Origin: Fimbriosthenelais zetlandica
Lineage: Eukaryota
Length of the DNA stretch: 64,000 nucleotides
Assembly: GCA_977030845.1 (NCBI GenBank)
Contig: OZ365118.1
Coordinates: 20,398,001-20,462,000, forward strand
Reading direction: 5' to 3'
Shown one piece after another: positions 1 to 35,360 of the stretch. How positions within the stretch are numbered: the stretch's first letter is position 1; each line of letters begins with the position of its first letter. The notes under the pieces were generated by a model, which saw only the letters and a program-made list of their open reading frames with translations, had not been told where the DNA came from and searched no databases. Made by a program: the position numbers and the translations under genes.

Positions 1-3000
1 TCAACTGAGCACAAAGACAGGGGAGGAGCATCTCTCATGCTGCCACGTCCCCAAGGCACCAGAAGTCTGCTTTTAATGAATAAAAATGATGAGACAGGAA
101 GAATAAGCACTTTAAATGTTCCTCCCAGACACGCGGGACAGGGAACACAGAATCTAATTATCTTCACCAGAAGGAATGGCGGTCTGTGACGGGTAATGTG
201 AAAAGACGCGCATTACACTGATTACAAAGAAACATTAATTTCTTTCATTTGTAATAAAAAGAAGGGATTCCATTCAGGGATGAGATTGGCGAGGTGGGGG
301 AAGGTGTTACAACGTCATCTTTTGTGACTGTGATCAACAACTTTGTCTTCCATAAAGATTATGTAAAGACTAAAGTCCTCTCTTCACCTCAATAGTCTGA
401 GACAGTTCTTGTATCACTCAAATGAAGAGTCGAGAAATTTTGTAAGTGCAAAACAAAGTAAGTGATGGGAGACTTTGTCTTTATGTCAGAGAGTTGTGTG
501 GTCAGACTTTGTGACTTTGTGTGGGTCGGTTTGTCGGGGGTACTGTAGTAGTATTGACCATGGTCCTAATGTCCACACATGAAGCCATGTATACCACCTG
601 CTACCCTCACCTCACCTCACACTGACTGACCTTTACTGACATAACACTTAGTGAGCTTTAAAGGCACACTGGTGCACACAGGTAATGCCTGGCCTGGAGT
701 CCCACATCTTATATAGGGCCTCCAGCCCCCCCAACCCTACCCCCAACTTACAGGACACCAGCCCTGCCCTCAGCTAGCCCTGCCTCTCCAGACCAAAGCT
801 GAATCAACACAAGCAAATGGACAAACACTCGTGGACAACCAGCCGAGCCTTCACACCACAATACTGGACCATTTACCCTAATTAAACTCCCTCCACTCAC
901 GCCTGTAAAGTCCATACCGCACTTTTAATACCCAGGTTTTTAGTTAATGGAATTCATTACATCTTATTTCTTGCAGCTGCATGAATCATCGCACCCAGTA
1001 ATACTATCAGTAATGCCGATTTCCAGTCCATCTAATCAGCCATATCAGACACTGACCATTTATTAATCGGCAGATTGCAGGCAATACAATCAAGATTCAC
1101 TCTGTGGATCACTGGAGGCGAGATGCGAGGTGAGGGACTGGCGAGGGGCGTCCTCCAGGGCACCACCATGACAACAGGCTGAGGGTATGGAATAGAAAAT
1201 GATGAGTGGGGGCCGGGGGGTGGGGTAAATACATATGACTGGTCTGTCATGAATTGTCCATCGTTTCGCCACCCATGGCAGGTCCGGGTATTGAATACCG
1301 GCCATACAATCAGGGACGTCAGTGGACGCTTTCACAAATGACTATTTTCCTCTGATTGTATCAGGTAATAATAAATCATACAGCAGCTATTATAGAGGCG
1401 GAGTCTGAATGGCTTCATGATGAGGGGAGGGGTGACTTCACGGAGAAAACTAGATCTACTTACTACTACAAGACAGACTCAAATGTCTAGAAACTTGGTG
1501 AATAAACAATGTAGACGTACTAAATGGCAAGCAACTTGGTTATAGAAAAGTTGCAGCAACTTGAGTAAATTTTGCAATGACAAAGACAAAGTATACCCTA
1601 ATATGCTTTGTCATTTGTGAGATAATCCCAGTTTAAAAGTCACATTTCTACAGACAAGTGGAACATTGGAGTAAAGCGTGGAGAGGGAGAGACACAGGTG
1701 AATAATTGAGGCGGTGAGAAATGTCAGAGCACCACAAGGGAACTGTGATTCTCACCATCCAGGTTTTACTGCGCTTTACATCCAATCCTCGTCCAGTAAA
1801 CCGAGACATGATGCTTTAAGTTTTCATTGAGGATTTTCTTTATGGTATAGTTGTACATGCAGTATGTATGCTCGCTCATAGCACTAGTTGTGTTTTACAG
1901 GATGAAGATGAAACATAACACGACAGTGAACACCAATACATTCATGGAACCTATGGATTCTGTATGCAATTCTGTATCCAAGGCAAAGGCTCAACCAACT
2001 GATCTGATAAATGGCAGGGTTAAAACTCTGTAGCAGAGTGAAATATGAATGATATCTACCAATATAACACTGATTACCATCGGTGGGGGAATTAATTCTT
2101 TTACTTTGGTATTCATAACCACCACAGATTGGTGACAAAGCCCATTAAGGTAAACGGTAGGGGGGGGGGGGGGAGGGGGTATGTACACGTAGTCAAGGTT
2201 ACCTCATAATTACCCTACAATAATATTATTATATACCCCTGGATGGGACACTTTAAAGTCAGTACCATTTTCATAATGTGATTAATACTAGAGATAAAAT
2301 CATGTCAAGTTCTCGGAGATTTTTGCATAGATTAAAAGGATCCAACTAGTATAAATAAATGTACCTAAGATGACTAAGTTTCATGAGAGGGAATAATACA
2401 TTAGATATATATGAGGATGAGGATAGAGTGGAGGGTGCACTTAGTGGGAGAAATGTGCCACTGGGTCAGGAGGAAATGTAAAACAGTTCACCTTAACGGG
2501 GACATCTGGCGGCCTAACCGTTTACTACTATAACAGGGGGCAGGACTGGCCCGGACTGAGTCAAAGTACACTATACAATAGACAAATTGAAGTGATGATC
2601 TTTGAATCAGTCTGTTTTGAGAGGATTCTTGTCTGTCCATCTATTTATCAGTTTCTGTCTCCTACTGTCTTTTATTCTACCCCCCCCCCCCCCCCCCACC
2701 TTCACACTGTGTATTGGTATTGGCGGCCCCATGCTTGCCTCTAGTACAGTGTTTATTGACTATTGCCCATCTGACCCCCGCCTGGGATTTCTCTGTCAGT
2801 GTGAATGGCATTCTGTCAGCCATATACAAGTCTCACACCCTCCACCCATCATTCCTCTCTCACAGAAGTCAATCACACACATTAAACTTTACCCCCACCC
2901 GCCAGTCTTACCTCCCAGTCTCATCAGTATGCTAATCAAGCTCCACTCACCGAGCTGCCAACCTCTCACACAAATTACCCAATCTCAAAGTATGCATGGA

Positions 3001-6000
3001 TTCAGCTTAAAATGGATTTAAATTATTTAAATCAAATTTATACCAAACTGGTTTGGGAATTTGCCTAGCAAACTGAGGATTGAGAATAGATAGTGTAGGG
3101 GAGTCAGTCAATGTCATGCCTTCATCCATGACCAAATATTCTCCTGGTTTAATGAAAGCTGGTGAGAATCCGGGAACATAAAGAGGGATAGAGGAGGCGT
3201 GTCCCGGGATTAGAGATACACTGATTTATTCCCCATCTATTGACTCTACCTTCATTTCCCCTTGTCGGCCACATCCCTGGGGATATAAAGGGATAGGGTG
3301 CTACCCCACACCCCGAGGGACAAGCATTGACTTATTCCCAATAGCTTAGGCCAAACAATCCAAACTGTGGTGTGTATCTCACATGAACAATCCCCTTTAG
3401 ATTTTCTAAATCCAAAACCAAATGACATTCATGAATACAGTTCTTGAATTCATCATGATTGAATAAATAAAGTTGATGAATTAAACATGTTTAACTGGGG
3501 GACTTGAGACGTGAGAAACACACGTCTTTTATGTCTGGCTTTGATACCTTCGTGGATTAGGGACGCGGATCCTTAATGAAATTAACTAATCTCAAAGTAG
3601 CAATTCATCTGGAGAGAGTAATGGAGATGGGGGTGGGGGAAGGTAGGATGGTGTAAGGGAGACAGGAATATGGTCGCCATCCCAGCTAAATTAATTAATA
3701 AACTGATGAGGGATTTGTCATATTTTCCTATATGGCTCATATAACGTTTCATAATCCAGTCTTATAACATTTATTATGCAATGGATCCAGGGGACAAAGC
3801 CTCATTTTCTCTTACTTAGGGTTTAACTTTAAGTGCATCTGGAGCGACTTAGAGACTAAACCAGGGAAATACATGGCAATATATGAGAGAAAGTATCAAA
3901 TATAGAGAGTGTAGAAAGCCCAGAGATGACTGAGAGGTTAATAGAGGACAATAGTGAGGGCGAGTAGACTGTGATATCATAAAAGTAATGGGAAGATTTG
4001 CCTGACAGATCTGTGTAGAGAATGAGTCAATCTCTCTATGTCAGTCACGACACCTCTCTCTATATTAGACATCATATGGTGCCGTCATGCTTCTCTCATA
4101 CCTACTGACCGTGTGTTTAAACTACAACATATGTACATGGGTACAAATGGTACATCATACACAGTTAAAATCACCAAAATCATCATCATTCTCCTTGATT
4201 TTAAAGCCTTGTGGATTCCTTCTTTTACAAAGTGTTCCAAATTGAACCAGATACCTATATGTAATCTGGTTGAACATAAATGAACTAAATATCCATAGTG
4301 GAACCAGAGCTTTCCCTGGGCATATTAGTAAACCCAGCTGGGGAAATAGTACTGTATGCCCCTCAGAGACCATATATTCATTATCATGTTATACCTTGAT
4401 TGATAATATGTTAAGAATTTAACATAGATAAGCTAAAGCCCATAGAGACCCATAGTCTGAGCCATGCTTGTTAATCCAGCAGGGAGATATGACTGGGATG
4501 ATCCCGTGGGGAGGGATTAAGGGAGCATGTGAGAGATATAGGATTACAGGCTATTTTACCCCAATAAACAAACACAGACATGCTACCATCTAACCTCAAT
4601 ATCCTCACAGCGGGCAGGAAGCCTGCAGACATGGGGAGTGGGGAGTTGCATTTATTAAAGCAATGGGAGATTCGTTTTTATCGAAGGCAAAAATCTCCTG
4701 CTCAATGAACGATTACCTTTCTTACAAATGCATTTGAGTCTGCTTTAAGTACCTGGCAGGGACGTGTATTTAATGAATTGTTAAGTACACTAGCTATATA
4801 TAACCCACAGAATGTAAGTAGGACACCGGGCCTGAATGACTGGGTATATAATCAGATTTCTCCACTCATCACACTATTTTAAGTTAACCTCAATGCGGCC
4901 CACAAACAGAATCAACAGACCATGTCGGTACAGAGAAACTATATTAGACCAAGGTCGGTTCTCACATTCATTAGATTTAGAGACCAAGTTAAGTTCACTT
5001 GAGAAGTACAGTATACCTTGGAGCAAGAGGGGTCTAACATTGTACACAGGCGTTTAACCTTTGTTCAGGGTGTTACCGTACAGTCTGAAAATCTATTAAA
5101 ATAGACATAAACTTACTGCAACAATAACGTGACTTTTTAAAGCGTTAGAATGTAGAGAAGGTCATTGTTTTTCTAGTGTGATATGTTTAGGTCGGTTTAC
5201 AATGTTGTGGTCTCACACGACACTTCACAGATTGTCTTACATGTCATCAGATAGGATGAACTCACACGCCTGGGAAGTGAACATTATTTAAGTTAAGGAA
5301 ATGATGTTTTTCTTCCAAACTGAATACAATCTGTCACTCTGCTAAATGGATTGCTTATCCAATCCAATTAGGCCTGACAACATTTCAGACATGTCAATTA
5401 TTGCCGTCAAAGTTTGGGCAAATAAAAAGTTTTCATGTCACATTTAGTCAACTTGGTTGAGAAGATGTGATATTGACCTGACAAGGGGGGAGAACAGCCT
5501 AGCCATTAGTGGTAGAAATATTCAGTAATTTAATTACTAGTGAAGGTCTATTAGAGGGAGGATGTACTGAGGGGGATGGGTGGAGGATGTGTAAATTAAA
5601 TTACTAGTCAATTAATGTATTCAATTAACACCATTTCCATAGCAATGAATATATATGTTGGGTTGATTGGGGGGGGGGGGGGGTGAGGAGAGTCGTGGGG
5701 ACAGGAGGACGTGGGGGGATGCCTGGGGACAAATAACATTTCCTCTGACTTTCCCGGAAAGGAAACATTGGTTGTTCAGTGATCCGGACCAGATTTACAT
5801 GCCCCAACCCTGGCTTAAACGATGCAGTCAGGTCTAGTCTGGATGTTAGTCAGCTATATATGTACAAGGCCCAGCCCCCAGAGGCTTCACTAGACTTACA
5901 CTCGACATCTCCTCAAATTAATTAAATATATTCCCACCATAATATGCCTGCCTGGACCATATTAGGATTTCCCTCACTGAAAATTTCTTTCTCAAAAAAT

Positions 6001-9000
6001 CGCACAGAAGCGCAAAGAATGGATTATCCTTAATGGAAGAGTGCAATTATTTATAGCAGTAAAGAAATAATTATGAAGGTAGCTTGAGCACGTCTAGGTG
6101 ATGGTTACAGCACCATTTAACCGGGCTGACACGGCTCAGGCCCTGCTGGGTTTTTTCTTTATCTGTGAAAACCACATGCGCCATGAGATCTCCCTGTTTC
6201 CCCGATCACCTATTTTTAAACAACTTTAATTGTTTTTTCACTTCCTTCTTTTTCTTAAATTGCATTCTTAAAGCAAACCAAAAGTGGTCCTAATCATTTT
6301 GCAAAAACAGAAATCACCAAATAATAAATTTCTATGAACTCCATTTCGGAAAGGAGTAAGTGATTTCCGATTTCTAAATGATTTTTACAGGGAAAATGTT
6401 CAGTAAATAAATCAATTGGATAAAACAAAAGGCTGTGAGGAATAACCAAAATATTAGTCAATTCTTGTTTAGGCGTTAGGGGGATGGATGATTTTAGGTT
6501 GAGGGTCTGCCTATTAAGTGGATAATGAGATGATAATAAATAGACATCTATGAAAGCTGCTGCACTCCACACATTCACCGCTTCATTTGTCTCCCCAGTG
6601 AGAAACCGTAGTAACACAGATGCTAGTGGGGCAATAAGTCAGCCCAGTGATGGCCTATATTTGTGTATTGTGAGTTTGTTCTACTACACATCATTCCTAG
6701 CAAAGCAGGTCGGAAGTGGGGAATGTGCCTAGCATAACTCTCCCCCATGTTCCCCCACCCCCACCCCTACCCCGCCTCCCTTCCAACTCCAGCTTCCCAA
6801 TACCAAACACAAGCACAGAGCTCCTAGAAGACGAAATACCTACACACCACAATAACTTTATAATCGTTATGCAACAAAACATGTTATGTAACGCACTTTA
6901 TCATTATGAAATGGGTCATATTTATTTGTGAATTTTGTCGTAGGTTTGTCTGTAGGATCCGAGTGGGAAGCAGGATGGAGATTATATGTACATGTCATAG
7001 CCTCGACATTATCTCATAAAGTATCATGTCCTACACATACATGATTACCCTGACTGGCACTGTACAGGATGTTGGTTCATCTAATCATACTGACCAAGGA
7101 TGCTCACTTGCTTCTTGAAATATTATCCCAACAGCTGCAGAAATGAGTTCATTCTATTTTACAAAATGAACCATAATTTAATGTTAAGTCCGCAGCTTAA
7201 AGCAGACAAAGACTTGCTGTGGTTTAATGTCTAATTATGCCATAATAACTGTTCTAACCCCGTCAATACAGATCTCACTTTACGACCACAAGTCCATATA
7301 AAAGGTGGCAGAATCCGGGATATAAGTCAACGTTTGATCCTCTTACTAATCGTCTAAGTTCAACTTGACAGTGCTTGAGGGCAGGGGGAGCATTAGGGGA
7401 TTTAACAGGGGGCAGATGATGGCCCATCATGTAAAGAAGGCAGAGAAATAAACAGAGAGATAAAGAGAGAGGTCGCTATGTTAGCGTTTCACCTCCCATA
7501 GCTCCTACTACTGAGGGCAGACCAGCCTATAGTCTGATCAACAGGGCTTGAAATGGTCAACAAGTTCCCAGGATTCACCATTTACCTTATATCAAAGTCT
7601 TTCAGCAAATCCTGAGGGTTTAAGCGAAACTAAAACGCCTGATTCACACATGTCATTCATGTACTATCTACCAAAGGCACAGCAGACCAGGGCCTAAATC
7701 TAAACTCCCGAGCCTTACATGATGTATGTTAACTTGGTGAAAAGAGCCGACAAAAAGGCAGGAGGAGAGAGAGAGGGATAAATAGCCGGAATTTATGTGC
7801 TGATAATACGGGAGCTGGAGACAAGAGAGAAGATAAGAGAGAGACGGAGTGTTGTACAACAATCTGAGATGTAACAAGGCCACTCCAAGGATGCCAGCTT
7901 CTACTCTACTCATTCCTAGATACATTACACATCTGTGCACAATAAATACAGCTCTATATCCAGCTATCATTGCTGCACCGATCTCAACAGTTTCAATATC
8001 TCTAACGGTACAACTTTGTACAAGTACAAAGCCGATTTAGAAACTAGTTGTGAAGTGGACGATAATAACAATGTATTGGTTTACTATAGTATATCATCCA
8101 TACATGAGTGGTTCCTTTCTCAGAATATTCAATACAATAATATACTGTACATTATTTATTATACTGTAACAGTATATATACTGTATAATACACCCTGTCT
8201 GTAGGTGGCTCAGGGAAAGGGTCACTGAGCTTCACCCAAATTATGTGATATTAAATTCACAATATTTTAGTGTAATAAACACTTAATACGAAGCAAAGAG
8301 AATATAGTCATTGACAAAGGTTGAGTATGATCTAATATGACTCAATGCCGATTATGCGTGAATTCCTACCATAGTTACATCAACTGATCATCATCATGTG
8401 TGTCCTCTTTTTTAATCAAAGTACAAGAGTCCAAAAAACCTCCTGATATCGCCTGAGTGCACCACTTGGCTTATAAATATTTGCACACAACAAATTATCT
8501 TATCAATTCTGGTGTGCAGGAGCCGACACGCCAATGGGATTTCTATTCAAGCATTGCTGAATTCTGTTCATGAATTTATGACAATACACGCATTTATGAT
8601 AGATTTTAACAGCCTTTCATGTTCCGTATGGCATTATATACGGGGCACATAGTGGGATATATTCATACAGTTATAATTAAATATTGGTATCTCCCATGGA
8701 CACAACTGGTGCTTCCCCTCGACCTTTGTATATCTGGGTCGATGCGTGCTGATATCATGTAAAATATATGACTATGTCCTCAGTAATTTATTATCTTAAA
8801 ATATTTGCAAAATTATGTTAGTCCCTAGAGCATAAACAAATGAATTTCACTCCAAAGTTAAACAACAGCTGAAGCACATAGCCTAGATAAATTGGAGTTC
8901 AAATGAGATTAATTTTGTATGGGACCTGAACGTACAAGTAATGCCTGATATTTTTTCTAAGTTTTTAACACATGTTCACCACACACATGGTGGTAAGTGA

Positions 9001-10487
9001 TGTAGTGGCAGCAGGTTCACCCTGGAGCTCACATAACACATGTTGTCCACCTCTAGCTGTGGTCACCACCTATAAGATGGTGCTCGGGGAGGAAGATGGA
9101 GCTGAGTAAACATGTGGTCAGCTGGAGACGGTCAGTGAAGGTCAGTCTTTACTGACCAACTGGTGCACACAAGACACGTGTACCTCTTACACTCACCCTC
9201 CCCATTATGAGCACACTGTTGACATACATGTATGTCATTCTGTCTCTGGTTATTTTGCCAATATTTGATGATGACCGCCAGGTAATAAATAACAAATCAA
9301 GGAGGCTCGTCATAGAATGTTCTCTTTTTACAACAAAAAGAAACGAATTCCAGACAGAAGTATTATGGATTTTTCTGTCAACCTGTGGTTTGGGAGGTGC
9401 TAGGTTCTCTTGATGTTAATTAAAGCAGATAAAAATCTTTAGTTGGTAACACAATGTCACAGTTCCTTATCTACACACCTACACCTACCAGATTACTTGG
9501 AAATGTCATAATATATATATTATCTATCTACATCTTTGTCATACATTCACATTAGCTGGGACTGTCATATTTACTCACTTTGTTTACCGAAGATAACTAA
9601 CCCAGGACATTATAGAACCTAGATAAGATATACAGTCATTATTCCTTCCCAGAATAAGAAACATCACAATATCAAAAACAAAAGTTATTATAAATGATGG
9701 ACATTCTGTACAGTATTGAGTAAGGCTAGGTGTTCTAGTCTACCGAAGCTGTTCCTACTTCATGGAGTAGGCCTACTAGTCTAAGCTGAAATAACATCAT
9801 GGAAAATGATGGCGGAATGACCCGAGGGCACATGATAGATCTGGCCTGCCCCAGAACAGAAGCATGGAAATATATCCCCATTCATTCACATCTGCCTGAT
9901 TGTAGGCAGAGAGAATATAGCCTGGAGATATTGCTTTCAGTACGGCTTACTTCCATCCCAATCACTTAATCAGCCCCAACCTGTGTGTCCCTTGTTATGA
10001 CCTTTAAATATCGACATTGTAAAGTAAGCCAATCTACCATTTAATTAAAATCACCATATTTAACAGACATCATTAAAGTAAAACGGTACTCAGACTCAGT
10101 CACATGAATCAAATGACATGCGTTATGTAAAAGGTGAGACATTAGTAAAACTCTTGTATAAGTTAACATTTGGAGAAGAAACCAACGAGTGGATAAAGAG
10201 GGATGGGCCCCTTCATGCCTGCTGCCTTGCTACCAGTGGACATGACTAATTGTTTGGTCAAACTTTGGATCCCTGTTGTAGTTAGAATAGTTAGGGGAAA
10301 GGTACAAAAGTACCACAAACTCCACCACAAAGTGCAACGAAAGGGACATTTGCTATTCCTTTGTAATTGTCTAAGTGGGGCGGGGTCTTCCCAGTCGAGT
10401 AAACAGGTAAGTACACGAAGTCCCAAAGCCAAGGCAGACCCAAGTCGATACATCAACAACATACGGAGTAGAGAGTCAGTCACTTAC

Positions 10488-10571
10488 CGAAGGGAAAATG
10501 CGTCGAGGGCCCGGCATCTTCTTCTCTGGTGGGGATTTTATCAGCCATCCTTGGCAGATAGCTCCCTCCAT
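10488..10571 (-). CDS. GAB1: First coding exon of a GAB/DOS-family (GRB2-associated binder / Daughter of sevenless) adaptor; N-terminus of the PH domain
   Basis: Minus strand ATG at 10571 reads MEGAICQGWLIKSPPEKKMPGPRRIFPS (28 codons) and ends at a consensus donor CG|GTAAGT (plus 10482-10487 ACTTAC), phase 0. GWLxKSPPEKK is the hallmark start of GAB PH domains (human GAB1 [24 protein letters not shown]). Downstream exons not found in window. Symbol denotes family, not a specific paralog. Confidence 0.85.
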
Positions 10572-10890
10572 CCTTACTTCACTCTCTTCTTGCACAAGTC
10601 TGGATCTAATTGAAAAGCATGGCATTAATACCGTTTCAAATAGTCCCAAAGTTAGGAAGACTTTCTCAAACAGGAAGTTCCATGGGAATATGGCGGACGG
10701 GGTTCCCCGTGTGACGTCATGAATGATGGCTGTTGTAAGCTGAGTGCTGATTGGTTAAAGTGTCTGGGATCCTCTTCCGTCCGCCAATCAACGTCCGCTT
10801 TACAACAAGCAGATGAACGAAAACAAATATGGCGTCCGGAGATAGGTTTTGAACAGGTGGTCACTGAAAATTGTTGGAATAATCTGTGTT
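10572..10890. promoter_or_regulatory. Compact bidirectional promoter / 5'UTR region shared by GAB-like (-) and CAPN15 (+)
   Basis: CpG-enriched 319 bp between two divergent ATGs. Contains ETS-like CAGGAAGT 10671-10678, YY1-like AATATGGCGG 10687-10696 and AATATGGCG 10826-10834, full CRE TGACGTCA 10712-10719, ATTGG 10750-10754 and CCAAT 10784-10788 (opposite orientations). Confidence 0.75.
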
Positions 10891-11156
10891 ATGGGTTCTA
10901 ATGCGTCGGTATTACAATGGAACTGTACTAATTGTGCTCACATAAACCCCACGGAGCGAGGAAAATGTATTAAATGCGGATATGAGCGTGTAGTGGGAGA
11001 TCTACCGCCTCGAAACGTCCAGGATGGGCAGGAGCAGCAGGAGAATACACTCACCCAACACAGAGACAGTTTGGCCGAAGATTCGCCTCAAGATCCCGGG
11101 CCAGTTACTTCATCTCCAGGACAAGGATCATCTACTCCACCAGTGAACCATGATAA
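10891..11156 (+). CDS. CAPN15: CAPN15 exon 1 (RanBP2 zinc finger 1)
   Basis: [29 protein letters not shown]...; donor AA|GTATGT, phase 2, joins the G at 24551 to give AAG (Lys). Confidence 0.88.
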
Positions 11157-22848: not shown

Positions 22849-25800
22849 CTCTCTCTATCCCTCTCTACTTCTCTCTCCCACTCACTATGCCAATATGCCA
22901 TACTCCTGCCTACCTTTGCTTTATGTTTTATCAAAAGAAGACCAATCAATAAAGCCTTTTCTTTGATAGATGCCATAGCGGGGTTTAATCCGCACTAACT
23001 CTATCAGCTTCAGTCTAAATGCCATTTGGGTGTTAGCTGCATGTCTCTGGAATAAGGCGAGTTAAATAAATAAAGTGTGGAGGGAATTTAAAAGCCTGGG
23101 CTTCTTTGTGGATCAAAAGAGAGTGGTGTTAATGAAATATTCAGAGGTTGTGAGGCCCGCGTGGAGGCCCGGTGTGGAGGCCCTCAACAGAAAGCCCTTG
23201 TTTTCCCATTGTGTGCCACTACCCGGGGTGGAAGGAAGAGCGATGGCACTTAATATCTGTCTCAAGTTTTCCCCCTAAAATAAATAAATGAGGAATAAAA
23301 TGACCAGAATAATTAACAATTCACGGGCTCACTTTAATTAATTATTTTCGGAATTTAAATGATTGAATTAAAGTGGTATTTGTTTAATTGGAACATCTGG
23401 GTGGAACCCACAGATTATTTTTTTAAATTTTGTTAATCATTTATATAATGGATTTATTGTTTTGTGGTGTGATCGGGGATTGAGATCATTAAGAGTGTTT
23501 GGATGATGTTCCCTCAGTGATATGTCATCCATATGTTCACTACATCATCGGTTTTCATTTAAAATCTAATAATTCCCACTTAGTCTCATCAGTGAGGGAG
23601 ACTCCTGGGAGATAATATCCATTTTCTCCTCAGCCTCAGACTTCAATTATGCAGTTATCGGGCAATCACCCTCCTTAAGATGGCTGCGAACATTTTATCC
23701 CCCCGCATTTTAAATTAGAAAAAAGGACATCCTTCTTTCTTCATTCATCCTTCCTTGCTGAATTATTCAACAACCGTAAATCCTTTTATTTCTGTACAGA
23801 TAAATGTCATTCTACCAATAATAACAATTTATTATTTTAACAGCTAATTATTTTAACAGATCAAAGTTCAATTGTTCCAGGCTAGACTTCATTTATCATT
23901 TTTGGGGCCCAATATTGATAATTTTCATTTAATTGAGAATAATTTGACAATTATAAGTATGTTTACAATGTTGGCTATAGGTTGTTTATTTTGCCCTCAT
24001 GTTTAAACATGAGCCTATAATGGCCTACTTCCCTGACTCAGGTCTCATGCCCTCTCCCTGTACTAATTAATCCTGCCTTGTTCCATTGCCATAAAAAGCC
24101 CAGCAATACCGAGTGGCTCGCTTGGTAGCTGGTATTTCTCTTCACAGAGAACAATATTGATTTAGAAAACATTATGGCCTGACTGGGCAAATAAAACTTT
24201 TCTCGTTACACTATAAACTTTCTGCTATGGCCCTGTTTAATTGCGCAATCCAACAGTGGACTAGTAAACTTATTGGATTAAAAAAACTTTCTGAAAGCAT
24301 CATTAGTCCTATAACTAACTTCACATTGTTTTACACTGTAAAATGTGGAAAAAGCTTTACTCACTGAGAAAGTCAATCATGCTAGGAATTATCCTGCACA
24401 AGTTTAAATTGAATAAAATCCTAAGCATTACTATCAAAACATGATTGAAATCCTTGCTTCTGAATTTAGATTTGTTCGCACAATTTCATAATTAACTTAA
24501 AGCCTGAGATTAGAAGTGAAGTAATTGGATCTATTTTCTTGTAATTTCAGGTCAGTTAATTTGGAGTCTCGACAGGAGGAAAGGATGGAGGTAGACACAG
24601 ATAGTCCAGATTCTGCATCTCTTGCCTCGGGTGGCCCAGCCCCACCCTCGGGTGGCCCCAAAAAATCCTCGGGTGACGACAAAACCCCTTCGGATGGCCA
24701 AGCTCTACCCTCGGATGGCCCAGCTCTACCCTCGGATGGCCAAGCTCTACCCTCGGATGGCCCTGCTCCCTCGGGTGGCCCAGATCTACCTCCAGGTGGG
24801 CCATCTCCACCCTCGGGTGGGCCAGTTCCCACTCACCCATCATCTCTTTCACCCTCACAAGCTGAAGCCAGTCGTAATGAAGACATTGAGCTGGCTGGCA
24901 CTAAGGTACCATCAATAGCCACCAATGTGGCTGCTGCTGCTGCTTCAGCTGCTGCTGCTGCTGCTGTTATAGCTTCCAGCAGTCTCTCTCCCTCTCCCCC
25001 CTCATCCAGCCTCTCTCCCTCTCCTCCCTCCACCAGCCGAGTCTCAGACACTCTCACCACACCAGCCCTGACACACACCTCACCACACGTGAGACCAGAA
25101 ACATACAGTAAAGTTAGAATGAGGGTGAAAACAAAGCGGAAGAGGCTGCCCTCCCCTGACGAGGACACGGGGGAGGTGAGTAACGGTAATGTAGGGGTGG
25201 GATCCCCGCTGGAGGAGGAGGTGGAGGAGGGGGCCGGGGAGGAGGAGGAGGAGTGGACAGAACATAGTGATAAGGAAACACCTGACGACAGTACCAAGTG
25301 GAGGTGCATGCGATGCTCCTTACTCAACCCGGACCCCGTGGATTTATGCATCGCGTGTGATGAACCAAAGTCAGTGCTTCTCAAGAAGAATCCAGTTAAA
25401 ACAGTGGAGAGTAAAGTGGGAGGATTGGTGAGAAGTGTTGACAATGACAGGAGGAGTGGTGGGCGGTATGGGAAGAGGGTGCCTGGACTTAACCACTCTA
25501 CTAATACAGCTAACTGTGATGGTAGCGTCCATAATGCTCACCGCAATGATCTCAGGGATAAAATGGCCAACAGTGCATTCAACAGTAGCAGTAGTCAAGA
25601 TAGCTCCTCCCTTACACCTAGAGGTCCACAGGAGGCCAATAATGTTCCTGATGTCAACAGCAATACCCAGCCTGATATTGACAATTACCCGGCCTCCCCC
25701 ACCCCCGGGGGAGAGGACGGGGAAGATGTGATAGTGGTGGAGCATCGGGAGGGGGATATAGATTACGCGGTATGGAAGTGTAGGAGATGTACCTTAGAGA

Positions 25801-28800
25801 ATACAGTGATGGCCCAGCGCTGTGTGGTCTGTGAGGCACCGAGACGATCCAATATGCCAACCATGTTCCCCGATGACCAGGTCCTGCTCATCCCGACCCC
25901 GCCCTCCTCCACCTCCCGGAACCACAATAGGATGGTTGATAACAACTCATCCATAACGGGCGTTAGATTACGTGAGGTTCTGCCCTCCTCCAGGGATCAG
26001 GACAGCCGCTCATCATGGCCCAGTGCTCAGACAAGTCGAGGGAGCGCCACACAGACAGACGCACCTCCACCACCAGCGGATAACAAAGATAAGACAAGCT
26101 GGAACTGTCATAACTGTTCATACGCCTGTAACTCAGCCTCAGCTAAACAATGTGATGTTTGTGATTACCCTAGACTGAGAACCCAGGCAGATAAATCAGG
26201 TAGTAACCCCCCCTCATCATCATCATCATCAGCTGAGAAGGTGACCAACGGTCCTAAAACCCGGCCTCGATCAGTCATTGAATCAGTGTCCAGTAGTTTA
26301 CGTCAAGTGAAGGGACAGAAGGGGACGTGGGGGTGCCCCAGGTGTACCCTGCTCAACAAGGAGAGCGCCATTATCTGTGGAGCATGCGGCTGTAGGAACC
26401 CTAACACCCGCGCCACTGATGAGACTACATGGGTGTGTAGTCGATGTACACTGAGAAACGCTGCTAATGCTGAAACATGCCAAGCTTGTCATTCAGGTAA
26501 AGATGGTATATTACCTACCACCTTACCTAGTCCTACCTCCACTACCCCGTCCCCTACCACCACCACCACTACCCCCACCACCACCAACAACCATCCCCCC
26601 ACCACCACCACAACCCACCTGGCCAAGGTGGGCAATAAATGGTTATGTGATAAATGTACATACGCCAATAACCCTGACGATCCTGACTGTATGATGTGTG
26701 ATAATCCGCGACCCCCCGGCACGGTGCCTAATGGTAAGGGGCCGTCCTCCCCAGCCCCCACCCCTGGAGGCAGTCCAGTCACTGGAGGAGATATAGCAGG
26801 GTTTACTCCCCCTAAAAAACAGCTGCTTCAGCGTCAAACCACCATCTGTATGGAGGATCTACGGAAGAAGGAGGAAACCGAAGCCAGAGAGCAATGGGAC
26901 CAAATCATATCATTCTGTAGAGTAGTAAGTCTTTATATCTTTCTACTTGACCGATGGCTCCCCAAGGGCCGAACATAAGCCACTGAACTCTCTACTGTCT
27001 CTACTAAGTTAGGGGTTATTCTCAATATCCATAGCGGCATAATACTTTACTTTATATTGCCTCCAGCCTTCAGGCCCATTAGTACCACACATAAAAGACA
27101 TCCTGCTTGCCTTATATCTCAGTAACAAATGTTTCCTCCCAGTTATAATAATGATCATACTCTTTCTCCCACAGAATAAGGAGCCATTTGTAGACGACTC
27201 CTTCCCACCGACGCCCAAGTCTTTATATTTTGATCCGAGTCGAGCGAAGCACCGTGTGACTCAGTGGTTACGTCCTAACGAGATCCGGACGGCCCACGGG
27301 GAGGGACGTATACGGTGGCAGGTCTTCCGTACACCCTTCCCATCAGACATCTCACAGGGGGTCCTCGGCAACTGCTGGTAAGATTAGAGAAAAGGCTTAG
27401 GGCCCTGCTTGAGTAGAATTAGATTTTGGACAGTGTTCATTATTTCCCTTATCAAAATATTAAGGGGAGTGACATTGGGAAACACTGGATTCTATTCATA
27501 TGTTCTTCCCATGATAAATGTAATAGTATTTATCCATTATTTCTATGATAAATTAATAGTATTTATCCATTATGTCTATGATAAATATAATAGTATTTAT
27601 CCATTATTTCTATGATAAATGTAATAGTATTTATCCATTATTTCCATGATAAATGTAATAGTATTTATCCATTATTTATATGATAGATGTAAATCCATTG
27701 TTGCCATGATGCTAATAATTTTGATCTATTCGTCCCTAGGTTCCTCAGTGCTCTAGCTGTGATAGCAGAGAGACCTGAGTTGGTAGAGAGAGTAATGGTC
27801 ACTCGTCAGTACTGTCCAGAAGGTGCGTACCAGGTACGACTGTGTAAGGACGGCAAGTGGACCACAGTGCTGGTAGATGACCTGCTACCATGTGATGCTA
27901 ACGGTCATCTCGTCTACTCACAGGTCAGTACTGACCAGCTCAGTCCATATAGTATGGACAGGCTCAGCTGGTAGACTTTCCAGGTTCAAATTCCTCAAGC
28001 TTTCTCAAAATTTGCCATCTTCCTTCTTCAATTATTAAATGCCAGCCGTACCTCCAATTCTTTGTGGTGAGAGGCTTGTAAAAGCCAACTATCTCCCTAT
28101 GTCTAGCTCTAAGATGAAAGGCATCTACAAGATCAATTCACTGGGTTCAAACCCCAAAGCTGGTGTCTCTTAATGACTTGAGTCACTGGTGCTTTGAATT
28201 CAGAACTTTATCGAGGATGTTAAACTTTATTGTGCTTTCTAATACAGGCTAAGCGGAGACAGCTGTGGGTACCACTGATAGAGAAGGCTCTAGCCAAGCT
28301 TCATGGCTGTTACCAGGCTCTCATTGCTGGACGGTGTATAGAGGGGCTAGCTACCCTCACCGGCGCGCCGTGTGAGAGCATCCCGCTACAACGTACGTAT
28401 ACATATAGTCTAAAATCAATTTATTATTTTCACTAATTTATTTCATCATCCAGAACGACTGGCGAATTTCGCCAAAACTCCAGGCCATGTTCAGTGGTCC
28501 TGCGACTTGTGGCTCACTCTGCATTATATGTATGAATACGTTAATGAAATAATGCTGTCTTCTTACAGCCTCAGGACCGAATCCTCGCCCTGAAGATATC
28601 GACCCTGATCTTATCTGGGCCCAGTTACTCAGCTCCCGAGAATCAAGGTAAACCAACCAATATTAAATATTACCCTGAAACACTGCCACTAATCAAGACC
28701 ACTTCAGGGATCATCTCAGTAATATTCTTGAACGAAAAAGGGAAAAGAAAACTGAAATATTTACAAGCAAAATATTCCCGAAACCATCCTTATCAATCAA

Positions 28801-31785
28801 AGTATAAATTTCATTACCTTTAGAAACATTTTTCTTTCCTTTTCAAATGTTTTTAACCGTCTGTAATTCAATACTGGGTTGATGAATCGAGTTAGTGAGA
28901 TGAAATGGATGATTCCTCAGGGAGCAGGGAGGAAGAGGAGTCCCGTAACTTAATTTCTCACCTCTTTTATCTCTGCCTCCCTCACCACTACTCCCACCAT
29001 CAGCTTCTTATTACCCAGGGGAAACACGGGAAAATCAGACAGGGAAAACAGGGGGAAACCAGACAGGGAAAACAGGGGAAAATCAGATGTTTTTTTTTAA
29101 TGTTATTCTTGTATCGTTACAGGTTTTTGATGGGAGCGTCATGTGGAGGGGGGAATATGAAGATAGATGATACAGAGTATGAGAAGAAGGGACTACGGCC
29201 GCGACATGCCTACTCCATCCTGGACGTACGAGACGTAGCTGGAGCCAGGTATGTCTTACTCTATATCATTCACTTACTACTCCTACATATCTCACTAGAT
29301 AAGCACTCCTCCTCCTTTTTAAATATCTAAACTGAAATGATTAAACCTATTGTTTGAATGGAGAATTTCAGTACAGTCCAATATAAAAACTCTTCTAAAG
29401 TAACATTTCTTTTATCATATGCCTTGCCTTTTATTCATTTCACAAAGAACTGTTACACATCTTAATACAGTATTTAGATGAGTTACCACTTCTGTTTGTC
29501 CATTTGCCAGGTTGGTGAGGCTGAGGAACCCGTGGGGTCACTTCTCGTGGAAGGGTGACTGGTCGGACCACTCCCCCTTGTGGGGGAATATAGAGGCAGG
29601 TGTGAGGGAGCAGCTCATGGTGCACGGAGCTACAGAAGGCGTCTTCTGGATGTCTCTACAAGACATTATGACGTGAGTTACTCTCAAATAAAGACAAAAA
29701 TACAAGTATTAAACACCCAAAGACATCCCATTAGACATAGCTCACCTTACAACTCTTATACTCTCATATCAAATGTACATGAGAAGAGACAGGGACTATA
29801 TCATATAGGGTCTCTGGTAGAGCTAGATCTAAGAGTAACTCGCCATTTGCTCACTGATTAAGACTTGCTCAAGTATTATTTGTATTCTAATATGTTTGTT
29901 TGAACTGAAATCAGCTGTTACTCCAGTCCTGTAATGGAAACAAGTTAGTCTAATCCCTGCAAACCTTCCTATGTAACTGATCTAACACTTTATGGCACAC
30001 TTACTCTGTCAGTAACACCCTGTATATTGCTATTTCACAGGTATTTTGACGCTATAGACATCTGTAAGTACCGTCCTGACTGGATGGAGACACGTCTGGA
30101 TGGTGTCCTCCCGTTCCCGGGTTGTACTCAGCTGCGGGTGGCTAAACTGACCGTCTTTAGTCATACCGAGGTCGAGCTCGGCCTATTCCAGTCCGGCGCC
30201 AGGTAAATATATTATACAATCAGCCCGCCAATACCTGTAAAGAACAACAGACATAAAGAAATTAATGATATATATTAAATATTATAAATTATTCATCGAA
30301 GTCGTCCAAAAAATTCAATCAAGATTTTAATATATTATATTATCTTGTAAAATTAGACTTCTTTGTTTCATTTGAGTCTTAATTTCAGTTTACACGCGGG
30401 TTTAACATTAAACCTCGAGTATAATAAAGTAACTCATGTTTAATGTCACATTTACAGGGGTCAGGAGTTATCCCGTGGACCAGTAGACCTGTGTATTCTC
30501 GTACTGAGAGCGTTAGACCTGACTACCCGGGTAGTGGGCCGCCTAGTGACACACAGTAAGAGACAGGTCCGCAGCTTCGTGGATTGTAGCATCATGCTAG
30601 AACCGGGCGAGTACACGGTGGTCTGTGTGGCCTTCAACCACTGGTCAGAAGGTACAAATCTACTCATTTCAATCTCCTTTTAATATATGATCTGCTCACG
30701 AGAGCTGATGGAGTTAAACTAAATGGTTTACAAGGACTAACCAATAATACAAGCATCTAGCCATATCAAATCATCAAAAAATCTAGCCTTATGAGCAGTC
30801 TGATCATTTTTCTCATGAATTAATAGCATATGTTGGTTAATAAGTAATAATGTGTTTTGTTTTCAGGCCAGCCACCTCTTCACTACGTCCTGTCAGTACA
30901 CAGCTCTAAGGCCCTTATTGTTGACCCTGTCAAAGGTCCAAATTATATCCTGGCGGACGCCATCATCCAACTGGCCTTAGCTAAAGGCAACAGGCACGAG
31001 GTCAGTCATATACTAACATACTCAAGTCTGGGTAAAGTCTGGTTATAAAACCAGTAACATTTCTGTTGAATGAATGATAAGATGTTCTTTAGGGAAATAT
31101 CAACATGGAGTAGTTGTTAATACTTTATAAATCTATCTTGGGTAGATATTACTTTACTTTATAGCCAATAGCCATGTTAAACACTTATTGAATGTTGTTA
31201 ATTGTGATAGTATGATAGTTAACCTTGTATGTTTAATTGATTACAGGGTAGGGAGGGAATGACCACGTATTACCTGACCCACGGTTGGGCAGGTCTTATA
31301 GTAGTGGTGGAGAACCGTCTACCTGACTACAGCATCCATGTACAGTGTGACTGTACTGAGAGCTTTAATGTCGTCTCTACAAGGAGTGCTCTCAAAACAG
31401 TGGATGCCATCCCTCCCCTACACAGGTCCGTATCTTAAAGCTTATGTGTTGTACCTCCTGTGAATATATAGATTAAAAAAAAAGAAAAAAAAAAGATCAT
31501 TGAGACAGATAATGCTCTTTAAGTCTATGATTTTGGATAATTTTGAACTGTAAACCTTGTCTCTAACATAGTGTTATGTATCAATAATTGTGATTATTAT
31601 TTTTCAGACAAGTTGTGATTGTGTTGTCGCAGTTGGAGGGTAGTGGTGGATACTCTATAGGACATCGTTTGGTTCACCGGGTTTATTCGTCTAGCGGTGG
31701 TCTAGGTGACTGGGCTCCTGGTTCATCTCATGTACCGTACCTGTCTACAGACGTACAGGGTCTACATTCACCTAGACCGTTATGA
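10891..31785 (+). CDS. CAPN15: Calpain-15 / small optic lobes (SOL) calpain, full gene, 13 coding exons, 4386 nt CDS, 1461 aa
   Basis: Exons 10891-11156, 24551-26924, 27175-27377, 27740-27923, 28248-28392, 28569-28647, 29123-29248, 29511-29672, 30041-30202, 30458-30651, 30867-31000, 31247-31425, 31608-31785. All GT-AG with matching phases. N-terminus [20 protein letters not shown] resembles Drosophila Sol. 7 RanBP2 zinc fingers, CysPc domain ([19 protein letters not shown]) and C-terminal SOL-homology domain. Confidence 0.95.
14901..15030. repeat. Composite 30/20-bp tandem repeat
   Basis: Units TGAGAGTGGTGGCTGGGTGACATGTTTCAG (30 bp) and TGAGAGGTGACATGTTTCAG (20 bp) in the order 30-20-20-30-30. 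Confidence 0.9.
15146..15686. repeat. 15-bp minisatellite (GTATATCTGTGTTGA)n, about 36 copies
   Basis: Directly visible; variant units recur periodically. Confidence 0.98.
16791..16810. repeat. (CA)10 microsatellite
   Basis: Directly visible. Confidence 0.95.
19598..19654. repeat. 21-bp tandem repeat GATGCATCATGGCAGTAATAA, about 2.7 copies
   Basis: Directly visible, 1 substitution. Confidence 0.9.
19857..19931. repeat. About 37-bp tandem duplication (GTCGAATAGACCATGTCACA...)
   Basis: Two adjacent near-identical copies. Confidence 0.85.
21722..22052. repeat. 24-bp C-rich minisatellite (CAGCAACCTCCCCCTCCCCCAGCC)n, about 14 copies
   Basis: Directly visible; the unit has no stop codon in the frames shown, which explains four spurious ORFs. 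Confidence 0.97.
22121..22209. repeat. 40-bp tandem duplication plus partial copy
   Basis: CCCCACCCATCCACCTCCCCACCAAGGTCCTACCACTATA at 22121-22160 and a near-identical copy at 22161-22200. Confidence 0.9.
22773..22844. repeat. (CT)n microsatellite within a pyrimidine-rich tract
   Basis: About 36 CT units with one interruption. Confidence 0.97.
24551..26924 (+). CDS. CAPN15: CAPN15 exon 2 (2374 nt; low-complexity linkers and six RanBP2 zinc fingers)
   Basis: Acceptor TTTCAG at 24550; W-x-C-x2-C...C-x2-C fingers start at 25299, 25773, 26100, 26328, 26430, 26640; donor GTA|GTAAGT, phase 0. Confidence 0.93.
27175..27377 (+). CDS. CAPN15: CAPN15 exon 3 (catalytic Cys, TGC 27373-27375)
   Basis: [12 protein letters not shown]...WLRP...[11 protein letters not shown]; donor TG|GTAAGA, phase 2. 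Confidence 0.95.
27511..27691. repeat. 34-bp AT-rich minisatellite, about 5.3 copies, in CAPN15 intron 3
   Basis: Unit ATGATAAATGTAATAGTATTTATCCATTATTTCT. Confidence 0.95.
27740..27923 (+). CDS. CAPN15: CAPN15 exon 4
   Basis: [15 protein letters not shown]...[24 protein letters not shown]...YSQ; donor CAG|GTCAGT. Confidence 0.95.
28248..28392 (+). CDS. CAPN15: CAPN15 exon 5
   Basis: [43 protein letters not shown]; donor C|GTACGT, phase 1. Confidence 0.95.
28569..28647 (+). CDS. CAPN15: CAPN15 exon 6
   Basis: [27 protein letters not shown]; acceptor CTTACAG, donor AG|GTAAAC. Confidence 0.92.
29016..29088. repeat. About 24-bp purine-rich tandem repeat, about 3 copies
   Basis: AGGGAAAACAGGGGAAAATCAGAC-like units in CAPN15 intron 6. 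Confidence 0.8.
29123..29248 (+). CDS. CAPN15: CAPN15 exon 7 (catalytic His, CAT 29205-29207)
   Basis: [13 protein letters not shown]...[16 protein letters not shown]; donor AG|GTATGT. Confidence 0.95.
29511..29672 (+). CDS. CAPN15: CAPN15 exon 8 (catalytic Asn, AAC 29527-29529)
   Basis: [19 protein letters not shown]...[11 protein letters not shown]; donor AC|GTGAGT. Confidence 0.95.
30041..30202 (+). CDS. CAPN15: CAPN15 exon 9
   Basis: [21 protein letters not shown]...TEVELGLFQ; donor AG|GTAAAT. Confidence 0.93.
30458..30651 (+). CDS. CAPN15: CAPN15 exon 10 (SOL-homology domain)
   Basis: [11 protein letters not shown]...[31 protein letters not shown]; donor G|GTACAA, phase 1. Confidence 0.92.
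30867..31000 (+). CDS. CAPN15: CAPN15 exon 11
   Basis: [14 protein letters not shown]...[17 protein letters not shown]; donor GAG|GTCAGT. Confidence 0.93.
31247..31425 (+). CDS. CAPN15: CAPN15 exon 12
   Basis: [24 protein letters not shown]...[22 protein letters not shown]; donor AG|GTCCGT. Confidence 0.93.
31608..31785 (+). CDS. CAPN15: CAPN15 exon 13 (terminal coding exon)
   Basis: [24 protein letters not shown]...[11 protein letters not shown] 31783-31785; typical SOL-calpain C-terminus. Confidence 0.93.
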
Positions 31786-34565: not shown

Positions 34566-35207
34566 GTATGATTGGTCGTCCATGGAATCGATAAACTGTA
34601 TTTGTGGGGAAAATGTGAGGATTTATGAGAGGATTTTGATAAGATCGCAATAAGCATTGTGTGACGTGTTTTCATGCTCCCGTCCATGTCGCGGCCAGAC
34701 GGTTGGGATGAAACTCAACATAAACAACATATTTTACAGCCGTCATCCATTCCCTGAACACAGGTCGGGTATTTAATGGCTCCTTTTGCTGTTATAACAT
34801 TGAAACTGTTTAAGGAGAACTATTGGAATGCTGGCAGCCCGTTCTGAGCGAGGCGGAGACAGTGTCAGTTAGGATTTGATTCATTCCATTTGGTAGGCCT
34901 ACCTCATAGTACCTGCCTACCCCTACTTTCAGTTTGAATTAGGTCAGAAGTTCAACTAGTTGATGAACCTACGGCTGGCTTAAGGTGGGTACACCCATTT
35001 AATGTTTACAACATATGTATTCATTCATTAATTAGGCCTAAGACTTTTAAGGGGTATATTATTTTTAAAATAATTTCTTAGTGGTATTAACTTCCTATAT
35101 AATTCCCAACCCATGAAACCTTTCCATCATAGCATCCTATGCCATGGAGGAAATATTTGCTAATGACGATTTTCTTGTCCATTTAGATTATCGAAGTAGT
35201 TCAGAAG

Positions 35208-35360
35208 ATGGCCGCCCCACGTTTGAGCGCGCAGGACAAGAAAGACCTGGACAAATTCACCAAATACCTGGTTTACAAATGTATCCAGGTGATAGTGCAG
35301 TCCAGGCTGGGTGAGAAAGTCAAGACTCAATCAAAAGCTTTCTCTTCTGGATCAGACTGG
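35208..35360 (+). CDS. ATG13: ATG13 coding exon 1
   Basis: Kozak AAGATGG; MAAPRLSAQDKKDLDKF...GSDW; donor TGG|GTGAGT. Confidence 0.95.

Follow-up and report, generated by a model that had tools for sequence, protein, structure and literature searches.

In the 64-kb stretch of the Fimbriosthenelais zetlandica genome that we analysed (G000:C37:20398001-20462000, from an assembly of 447 Mb; hereafter the window), the first coding exon of a gene for a GAB/DOS adaptor (GRB2-associated-binding protein, or daughter of sevenless) very likely lies head-to-head with a gene for a calpain of the SOL (small optic lobes) type. The same head-to-head pair is found in seven of the 11 other animals that we sampled (eight of 12 if F. 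zetlandica is counted). We think it probable that this short exon is the true first exon of GAB, that the pair is ancient, and that the two divergent genes share a compact promoter. Three observations carry this reading: the structures of the genes, their adjacency and orientation in eight species, and the conserved position of an ETS site upstream of GAB.

The GAB/DOS gene

A first-pass annotation of the window had proposed that an 84-nt minus-strand exon with a consensus GTAAGT donor begins a GAB PH-domain gene, and the exon and its donor are present to the base. The annotation had also held that the exon is too short for the list of open reading frames (ORFs), which is not so: the list holds it within a 57-aa ORF that begins with TTG. 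The main parts of the gene are as follows (negative positions are relative to the window and lie to its left).

10571..10488, minus strand: GAB/DOS coding exon 1, 84 nt, 28 codons, ATG to TCG, translated as MEGAICQGWLIKSPPEKKMPGPRRIFPS
10487..10482, minus strand: exon 1 splice donor GTAAGT, abutting exon 1, phase 0
1..10481, minus strand: 5' part of GAB intron 1, the remainder of which runs beyond the left window edge
-25490..-25804 (C37:20372196-20372510), minus strand: GAB exon 2, Pfam PH match at 3.9e-16
-29621..-29893, minus strand: last GAB exon, with VQYLDLAL and TEYKEIDFVKTKAL

Exon 1 supplies GWLIKSPPEKK, the signature of PH-domain strand beta-1, and it is matched by tblastn with a GAB homologue as the query. 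Its start codon has a strong Kozak context (A at -3 and G at +4). There is also an in-frame ATG with a weaker Kozak context 18 codons upstream (10625-10623, minus strand), which would make a longer N-terminus or leaky scanning possible if the transcript begins upstream of it. Comparable upstream in-frame ATGs are found in the Pomacea and Patella GAB models.

The first-pass annotation had placed an AWKRRW-like second exon to the left of the window. On the minus strand, positions 1 to 10487 of the window proved to contain no PH-domain exon, and when we extended the hunt for GAB exons by 100 kb to the left (164 kb in total, both strands), we found one 25.5 kb past the left edge. This exon 2 has an acceptor with a polypyrimidine tract (TTTTCAG/AAATGG, phase 0), its open stretch starts right after TTATTTGTTATCTTTTCAG, and it translates as KWRRRYFVLGD...RTYFLAADSEDTMNRWVECLCKVCGFKPTDE. 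The two exons agree in phase (exon 1 ends, and exon 2 begins, in phase 0) and are separated by an intron of 35,977 bp. The Pfam PH match of exon 2 spans profile positions 17-104 only, without the first beta-strand, so exon 2 needs a beta-1 strand that is encoded by exon 1.

Several comparisons assign exon 2 and the joined exons to the GAB family. It is the sole GAB-type PH exon in the 447-Mb genome, and the GAB/DOS gene is single-copy. When exon 2 was compared to 1.84 billion representative proteins, there were 417 homologues at E ≤ 1e-3. Those with names are all called GRB2-associated-binding protein or daughter of sevenless, and they come from molluscs, a brachiopod, annelids, arthropods, and chordates. 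Among the full-length matches with names, the top ones belong to Pomacea, Mizuhopecten, Patella, and Lingula and are called GRB2-associated-binding protein 1/2-like or daughter of sevenless. (A search of solved structures gave generic PH domains only, such as DOCK9 and IRS1, and was uninformative on the family.) When exon 1 and exon 2 are joined, the product aligns colinearly with GAB N-termini from 12 taxa, and both it and its homologues contain a lophotrochozoan-type linker, xGPx(K/R)IFxx. In Pomacea, an RNA-derived contig shows the homologous exons 1 and 2 spliced together over 12.3 kb, with the junction at the same position. Also, many GAB models in the databases begin inside the exon 2 acceptor (MFQKWRRRYF...; these include P0009, P0011, P0019, P0024, P0033, and P0038), which indicates that the intron position is shared and that exon 1 is often missed. 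Thus, the first exons of GAB genes are short, lie tens of kb from exon 2, and are absent from many public models, and the calpain neighbour offers a simple landmark for locating them.

Downstream of exon 2, the rest of the gene has the architecture of the family, and the gene spans about 40.5 kb. Proline-rich exons were identified by tblastn (PPPPKRP is among their motifs), and the last exon aligns to the C-termini of the Lingula, Mizuhopecten, Patella, and Owenia GABs, with E values down to 5e-14. The motifs VQYLDL and EYKEIDFVKTKAL in the downstream exons are common to other GABs, and we take VQYLDLAL and TEYKEIDFVKTKAL to be the SHP2/Corkscrew-type tyrosine motifs of the family (SHP2-binding type by sequence). 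The strict motif for the C-terminal SH3 domain of Grb2, PxxxRxxKP, had no regular-expression match in the three minus-strand frames of the downstream region, where the models of the mid-gene exons are incomplete.

Could the 84-nt ORF be a chance or decayed look-alike, with the real first exon of GAB elsewhere? It would fit this explanation that the 28-residue peptide alone has no Pfam match. However, GWLxKSPPEKK and the xGPx(K/R)IF linker agree with the homologues at each residue; exon 1 suits exon 2 in its start context, its consensus donor, and its phase; and it is the only GWLxKSP-type candidate on either strand of the 164 kb. It also has the same position relative to the calpain gene (described below) as the annotated exon 1 has in seven other species. 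We consider a look-alike extremely unlikely and conclude that the only GAB/DOS gene of this genome very likely has 10571..10488 as its first coding exon.

The calpain gene and the conservation of the pair

The first-pass annotation had called the plus-strand gene on the other side of the gap a SOL calpain, and the predicted product does combine zinc fingers with a Peptidase_C2 core that contains the catalytic triad.

10891..11156, plus strand: calpain coding exon 1, ATG at 10891, RanBP2-type zinc finger 1, donor GTATGT
25296..26930, plus strand: exons with six further RanBP2-type fingers and a conserved linker (tblastx against Lingula, Patella, Owenia, and tick)
27172..30203, plus strand: catalytic-core exons (Peptidase_C2), with PF00648 matches at 27187-29673
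30444..31782, plus strand: putative C-terminal SOL-homology exons, open stretches of calpain-like sequence with a stop near 31782

The gene has seven W-x-C-x2-C-x3-N fingers: one at 10915, in exon 1, which is followed by an intron of 14 kb, and the rest at 25299-26699. The match of the exon-1 finger to Pfam Zn_ribbon_RanBP is weak and sub-threshold (19.5 bits, where the gathering cut-off is 27). We call it a zinc finger because of its W-x-C-x2-C-x3-N pattern and because of the homology of exon 1 to tick and Lingula (65% and 48% identity by tblastx, respectively). The stretch with fingers 5-7 (26325-26714) matches Zn_ribbon_RanBP at 1.6e-12 (46.9 bits). PF00648 is above the cut-off on four exons (single-exon Pfam values of 5e-14 and 2e-19), and the catalytic Cys (GNCW), His (HAYS), and Asn (RNPWG) are all present in the translated exons. 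The catalytic exons are 63-88% identical to the Lingula calpain. The C-terminal exons at 30444-31782 had no Pfam match in a search set that lacked PF26741, the CalpD_C model. Judging from these domains and residues, the neighbour is a SOL/CAPN15/CalpD-type calpain.

The N-terminus of this calpain, MGS(N/T/I)ASVLQW, is kept in F. zetlandica (10891-10920, plus strand), Lingula, the tick, and Orchesella. In the loci of the other species, the exons that encode it are on the minus strand (L017 at about 8069, L019 at about 9326, and L023 at about 1083). The peptide fits the consensus for N-myristoylation (Gly2 and Ser6), which suggests membrane anchoring. In Owenia and the three molluscs, no MGSxASVLQW-type exon could be found over a distance of 10 kb.

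To see how widely the pair is conserved, we examined the genomic context of the GAB orthologue in each assembly of the 11 other animals.

Owenia fusiformis (Annelida): pair present, 309 bp between annotated coding-sequence starts
Lingula anatina (Brachiopoda): pair present, 318 bp from ATG to ATG
Patella vulgata (Mollusca): pair present, 2.8 kb
Pomacea canaliculata (Mollusca): pair present, about 0.95 kb; one calpain model overlaps GAB exon 1
Mizuhopecten yessoensis (Mollusca): pair present, 5.8 kb
Ornithodoros turicata (tick, Chelicerata): pair present, 674 bp from ATG to ATG
Orchesella cincta (springtail, Hexapoda): pair present, 8.9 kb
Helobdella: pair absent, Frizzled upstream of GAB
Tubulanus: pair absent, another PH-domain gene upstream of GAB on the same strand
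Pollicipes: pair absent, an unrelated gene upstream of GAB
Branchiostoma floridae: pair absent, Pirin upstream of GAB

In all seven genomes with the pair, the next gene upstream of GAB is on the opposite strand and has Zn_ribbon_RanBP and Peptidase_C2 domains, with no called gene between the two. By precomputed annotation, the paired calpains also carry CalpD_C, except for Lingula's, where the domain is probably missing from the Pfam listing because the contig cuts off the 3' end of the gene. In Pomacea, one annotated calpain model (L015, 1-13614) has a 5' exon within GAB intron 1, so that the two genes overlap head-to-head, and there is also a zinc-finger-1 exon with its own ATG at 9065.

Surveyed in this way, the pair is widely conserved in protostomes. 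Since it is found in an annelid, a brachiopod, molluscs, and arthropods, it appears to predate the split between lophotrochozoans and arthropods and to have been lost several times. To judge from this distribution, the pair dates at least to the last common ancestor of those two groups. In searches for outgroups, an amphioxus GAB seed led almost only to vertebrates, and a Lingula seed led to molluscs and to arthropods (mostly chelicerates); the loci that we compared include no echinoderm, hemichordate, or cnidarian GAB. To our knowledge, the pairing is absent from human and Drosophila: human CAPN15 (16p13.3) and GAB1-4 are presumably on different chromosomes, as presumably are Drosophila sol (X) and dos (3L). 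Surveys that are anchored on human could therefore miss it.

The 319-bp gap and the rest of the window

The distance that the first-pass annotation had given between the two start codons, 319 bp, is exact. The motifs that it had described in the gap (a full cAMP response element, or CRE, two opposed CCAAT boxes, and ETS-like and YY1-like motifs) are all present.

10572..10890, no strand: inter-ATG region, exactly 319 bp, putative shared bidirectional promoter and both 5' untranslated regions (5'UTRs)
10654: second ETS core, AGGAAG, within the gap
10670-10678, plus strand: ETS site ACAGGAAGT, the only copy in the window; ACTTCCTGT on the GAB-sense strand
10687-10695, plus strand: YY1-like site AATATGGCG, adjoining the ETS site
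10712-10719, no strand: full palindromic CRE TGACGTCA, the only copy in the window, at -148 from the GAB ATG
10747..10756 (10750-10754), minus strand: NF-Y box 1, AACCAATCAG on the minus strand, CCAATCA
10784-10790, plus strand: NF-Y box 2, CCAATCA, opposed to box 1
10826-10834, plus strand: second YY1-like site AATATGGCG

Read from the calpain towards GAB, the order of motifs is YY1-like, NF-Y, NF-Y, CRE, YY1-like, and ETS. By chance, about 0.4 full CREs would be expected per window and about 0.002 per 319 bp. No TATA motif was found in the 319-bp gap, and no NRF1 or ZNF143 motif was seen in the promoter. With 319 bp between divergent start codons, the pair falls within the 1-kb limit for bidirectional promoters, and if the first coding exons are also the first exons, the distance between the transcription start sites must be even smaller, or the sites must overlap. 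The ratio of observed to expected CpG is 0.73 for 10400-11200, which is at the 95th percentile of the window tiles, and GC content has a local peak of 0.48 at the gap. For comparison, the window as a whole has a GC content of 41% (with zero N) and a CpG ratio of about 0.44, and the median CpG ratio in the window is 0.43. This depletion across the window is consistent with a methylated genome, in which the putative promoter would stand out as a weak CpG island.

We then asked which parts of the gap are conserved, by comparing the 320-400 bp upstream of each GAB ATG. A MAFFT alignment of five species gave an apparently "invariant" ACTTCCTGTT, which proved to be partly an alignment artefact (the tick has ACTTCCTAC). 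As the alignment of the whole region was partly artefactual and was weak outside of the motifs, we relied on position-anchored k-mers. All 7-mers of the 319-bp region (313 words, with no prior choice) were compared across nine species within ±40 bp. The ETS word ACTTCCT, which is antisense to GAB, ranked first: it is shared by five of the nine species, a level that was reached by none of 500 shuffles (the maximum in the shuffles was three). Given how often the word occurs as background in these loci, such sharing has a P of about 1e-8 (3.5e-6 once the 313 words are corrected for). The positions of the site relative to the GAB ATG are as follows.

F. zetlandica: ACTTCCT at -107
Lingula: ACTTCCT at -105
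Mizuhopecten: ACTTCCT at -109
Pomacea: ACTTCCT at -119
Patella: ACTTCCT at -124
Owenia: ACTTCCT at -144
Amphioxus: ACTTCCG at -86
Tick: ACTTCCG at -224

Thus, the ETS site, and not the CRE, is the statistically conserved element. Other motifs recur as well. Lingula, Owenia, Pomacea, Mizuhopecten, and the tick have CCAAT/ATTGG boxes nearer to the calpain, with the order kept; in three of these (Lingula, Pomacea, and Owenia), an ATTGG corresponds to NF-Y box 1 in both position and order. The k-mers CCAATCA and ACCAATC are common to Owenia, Mizuhopecten, and Pomacea at similar offsets. In Lingula, a CGCCAT adjoins the ETS site, at -114. The overall order of motifs is common to F. zetlandica, Lingula, Owenia, and Pomacea.

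The Pomacea contig also bears on where GAB transcription begins. It starts 26 nt upstream of the Pomacea ETS site, 145 nt upstream of the conserved MNKL ATG, and 97 nt upstream of the annotated upstream in-frame ATG. This implies that the ETS site is at, or just downstream of, the start of GAB; in F. zetlandica, the calpain ATG would then be less than about 190 bp away from that start.

We propose that a single compact promoter, TATA-less and of the CpG type, serves GAB on one strand and the SOL calpain on the other, and that both genes begin transcription inside the 319-bp interval. The two genes would share the factor-binding sites, so that their basal expression would be coupled. If the pair were split, at least one of the promoters would suffer, and this would account for the retention of the pair; in most lineages of protostomes, it would have stayed unseparated for over half a billion years. 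CREB input may be added to this, although it is the least supported step. Binding sites for ETS/GABPA, NF-Y, and YY1 are enriched in bidirectional promoters, and GABPA can drive transcription both ways (PMC3082894).

Several observations weigh against this proposal. First, the ETS site is also upstream of GAB in amphioxus, where there is no calpain neighbour, so it may be an element of the GAB promoter rather than a shared one. Second, the pair is lacking in four of the sampled lineages (Helobdella, Tubulanus, Pollicipes, and Branchiostoma). Third, the gaps of 2.8-8.9 kb in Patella, Mizuhopecten, and Orchesella mean that the pair can persist without a compact shared promoter. Finally, the other motifs are less constant: the CRE and CCAAT words, each considered by itself, are shared with two other species only, about a third of the shuffles reach two-species sharing for some k-mer, and outside of the motifs, the resemblance between the gap and that of Lingula hardly exceeds the level of shuffled sequence (z of about 2.4).

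These observations bring up another explanation, which is that two independent promoters abut each other and that the pair survives because a short gap offers few breakpoints, with the expression of the two genes uncoupled. The amphioxus site would fit this, as would the separate ETS sites near each gene within the 674 bp of the tick. Also, the gap has widened to 3-9 kb in three species while the pair remained unbroken, and four lineages have lost the pair without an obvious loss of either gene. On the other hand, finding the pair and its orientation in eight of 12 species and at least four phyla goes far beyond what would be expected of neutral gene order in metazoans, by the general argument of Irimia et al. 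(2012, PMC3514665). A spacing of 318-319 bp between the ATGs in two distant lineages (Lingula and F. zetlandica) leaves scant room for two promoters and two 5'UTRs, and the Pomacea contig, whose 5' end is 26 nt or more upstream of the ETS site, pushes the start of GAB towards the calpain. We consider two independent promoters unlikely, though worth keeping in view, and we favour the shared promoter.

The first-pass annotation had suggested that the promoter might respond to CREB. In that case, an adaptor for receptor tyrosine kinases (RTKs) and a plasticity-linked calpain would be switched on together from the shared promoter, by neuronal activity or by cAMP signalling. The perfect palindromic CRE is central in the gap and is the sole one in the 64 kb, full CREs recur at matching positions in Lingula (-142) and Owenia (-167), and CRE-like ACGTCA elements adjoin the ETS site in the tick. 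But Patella, Pomacea, Mizuhopecten, and Orchesella have no full CRE in the equivalent region, and sharing by two species is within the noise of the k-mer control. Furthermore, CREs in CpG-type promoters are common in housekeeping genes, where they are often constitutively bound by ATF/CREB. We are very doubtful of this explanation.

Elsewhere in the window, the next gene downstream of the calpain (plus strand, from 35187-36025) is a homologue of ATG13 (autophagy-related 13; Pfam ATG13, 2.6e-09). Tracts that are rich in G/C homopolymers lie at 12520-12640, 6700-6840, and 2680-2760; they translate as poly-Gly/poly-Pro, have similar flanks, and may be copies of a dispersed intronic repeat.

Implications and comparison with known systems

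SOL calpain has few established regulators or substrates, and it has no established functional connection to GAB. Few hints of joint regulation can be had from sequence alone, and the deep conservation of a divergent pair is one of them; a link to GAB that is kept from annelids to ticks, together with a conserved ETS site, gives a concrete and testable lead for the calpain. It is conceivable, but in our judgement quite unlikely, that GAB/DOS and SOL calpain form an ancient co-regulated unit that has been kept because the two proteins act in one pathway. Such a unit would be at least protostome-wide and possibly bilaterian, and the calpain might process substrates downstream of RTK-GAB-SHP2/PI3K signalling in neural development or plasticity. 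ETS factors are a classic nuclear endpoint of RTK/Ras/MAPK signalling, so the ETS site would give feedback control of both genes at once. The loss of the linkage in vertebrates and flies, the animals in which the two genes have been studied, could then explain why the connection has gone unnoticed.

A full-text search of the literature found no paper that connects GAB and SOL calpain. The pair itself appears to be unreported, and conserved bidirectional pairs and the NF-Y/ETS/YY1 grammar are already textbook knowledge.

The two proteins resemble their known relatives closely. Like GAB1-4 and DOS, the F. zetlandica GAB has an N-terminal PH domain with the GWLxKSPPEKK and WV.C.C.VCG motifs, a phase-0 intron after beta-1, a proline-rich middle, and paired SHP2-type tyrosine motifs at the C-terminus. 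Unlike them, it has a lophotrochozoan-type linker (MPGPRRIFPS) and a loop insertion. The calpain, like Drosophila small optic lobes, Aplysia SOL, and CAPN15/SOLH, has RanBP2-type fingers, a calpain core, and C-terminal exons; in F. zetlandica there are seven fingers, and the N-myristoylation-like N-terminus is common to the tick, the springtail, and Lingula.

As for the arrangement of the genes, there are two close parallels. First, the bidirectional promoters of mammals (PMC3082894) are also head-to-head within less than 1 kb, TATA-less, CpG-enriched, and furnished with ETS, CCAAT, and YY1 motifs. Their grammar is one of GABPA/ETS, NF-Y, YY1, and NRF1; the putative promoter described here is from an invertebrate and adds a full CRE. 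Second, conserved ancestral microsyntenic pairs (CAMPs), such as HSPE1-HSPD1, likewise consist of unrelated genes that are adjacent and divergent across phyla, with a very short intergenic region in several lineages and with retention attributed to shared cis-regulatory sequence (Irimia et al., 2012, PMC3514665). We did not find the GAB/SOL-calpain pair named in the main text of that paper, which does recognise conserved 5'-5' pairs with very short spacers as a class and attributes them to shared cis-regulation. Most simply, the locus can be read as a new example of that class of conserved 5'-5' pairs, with no new mechanism involved.

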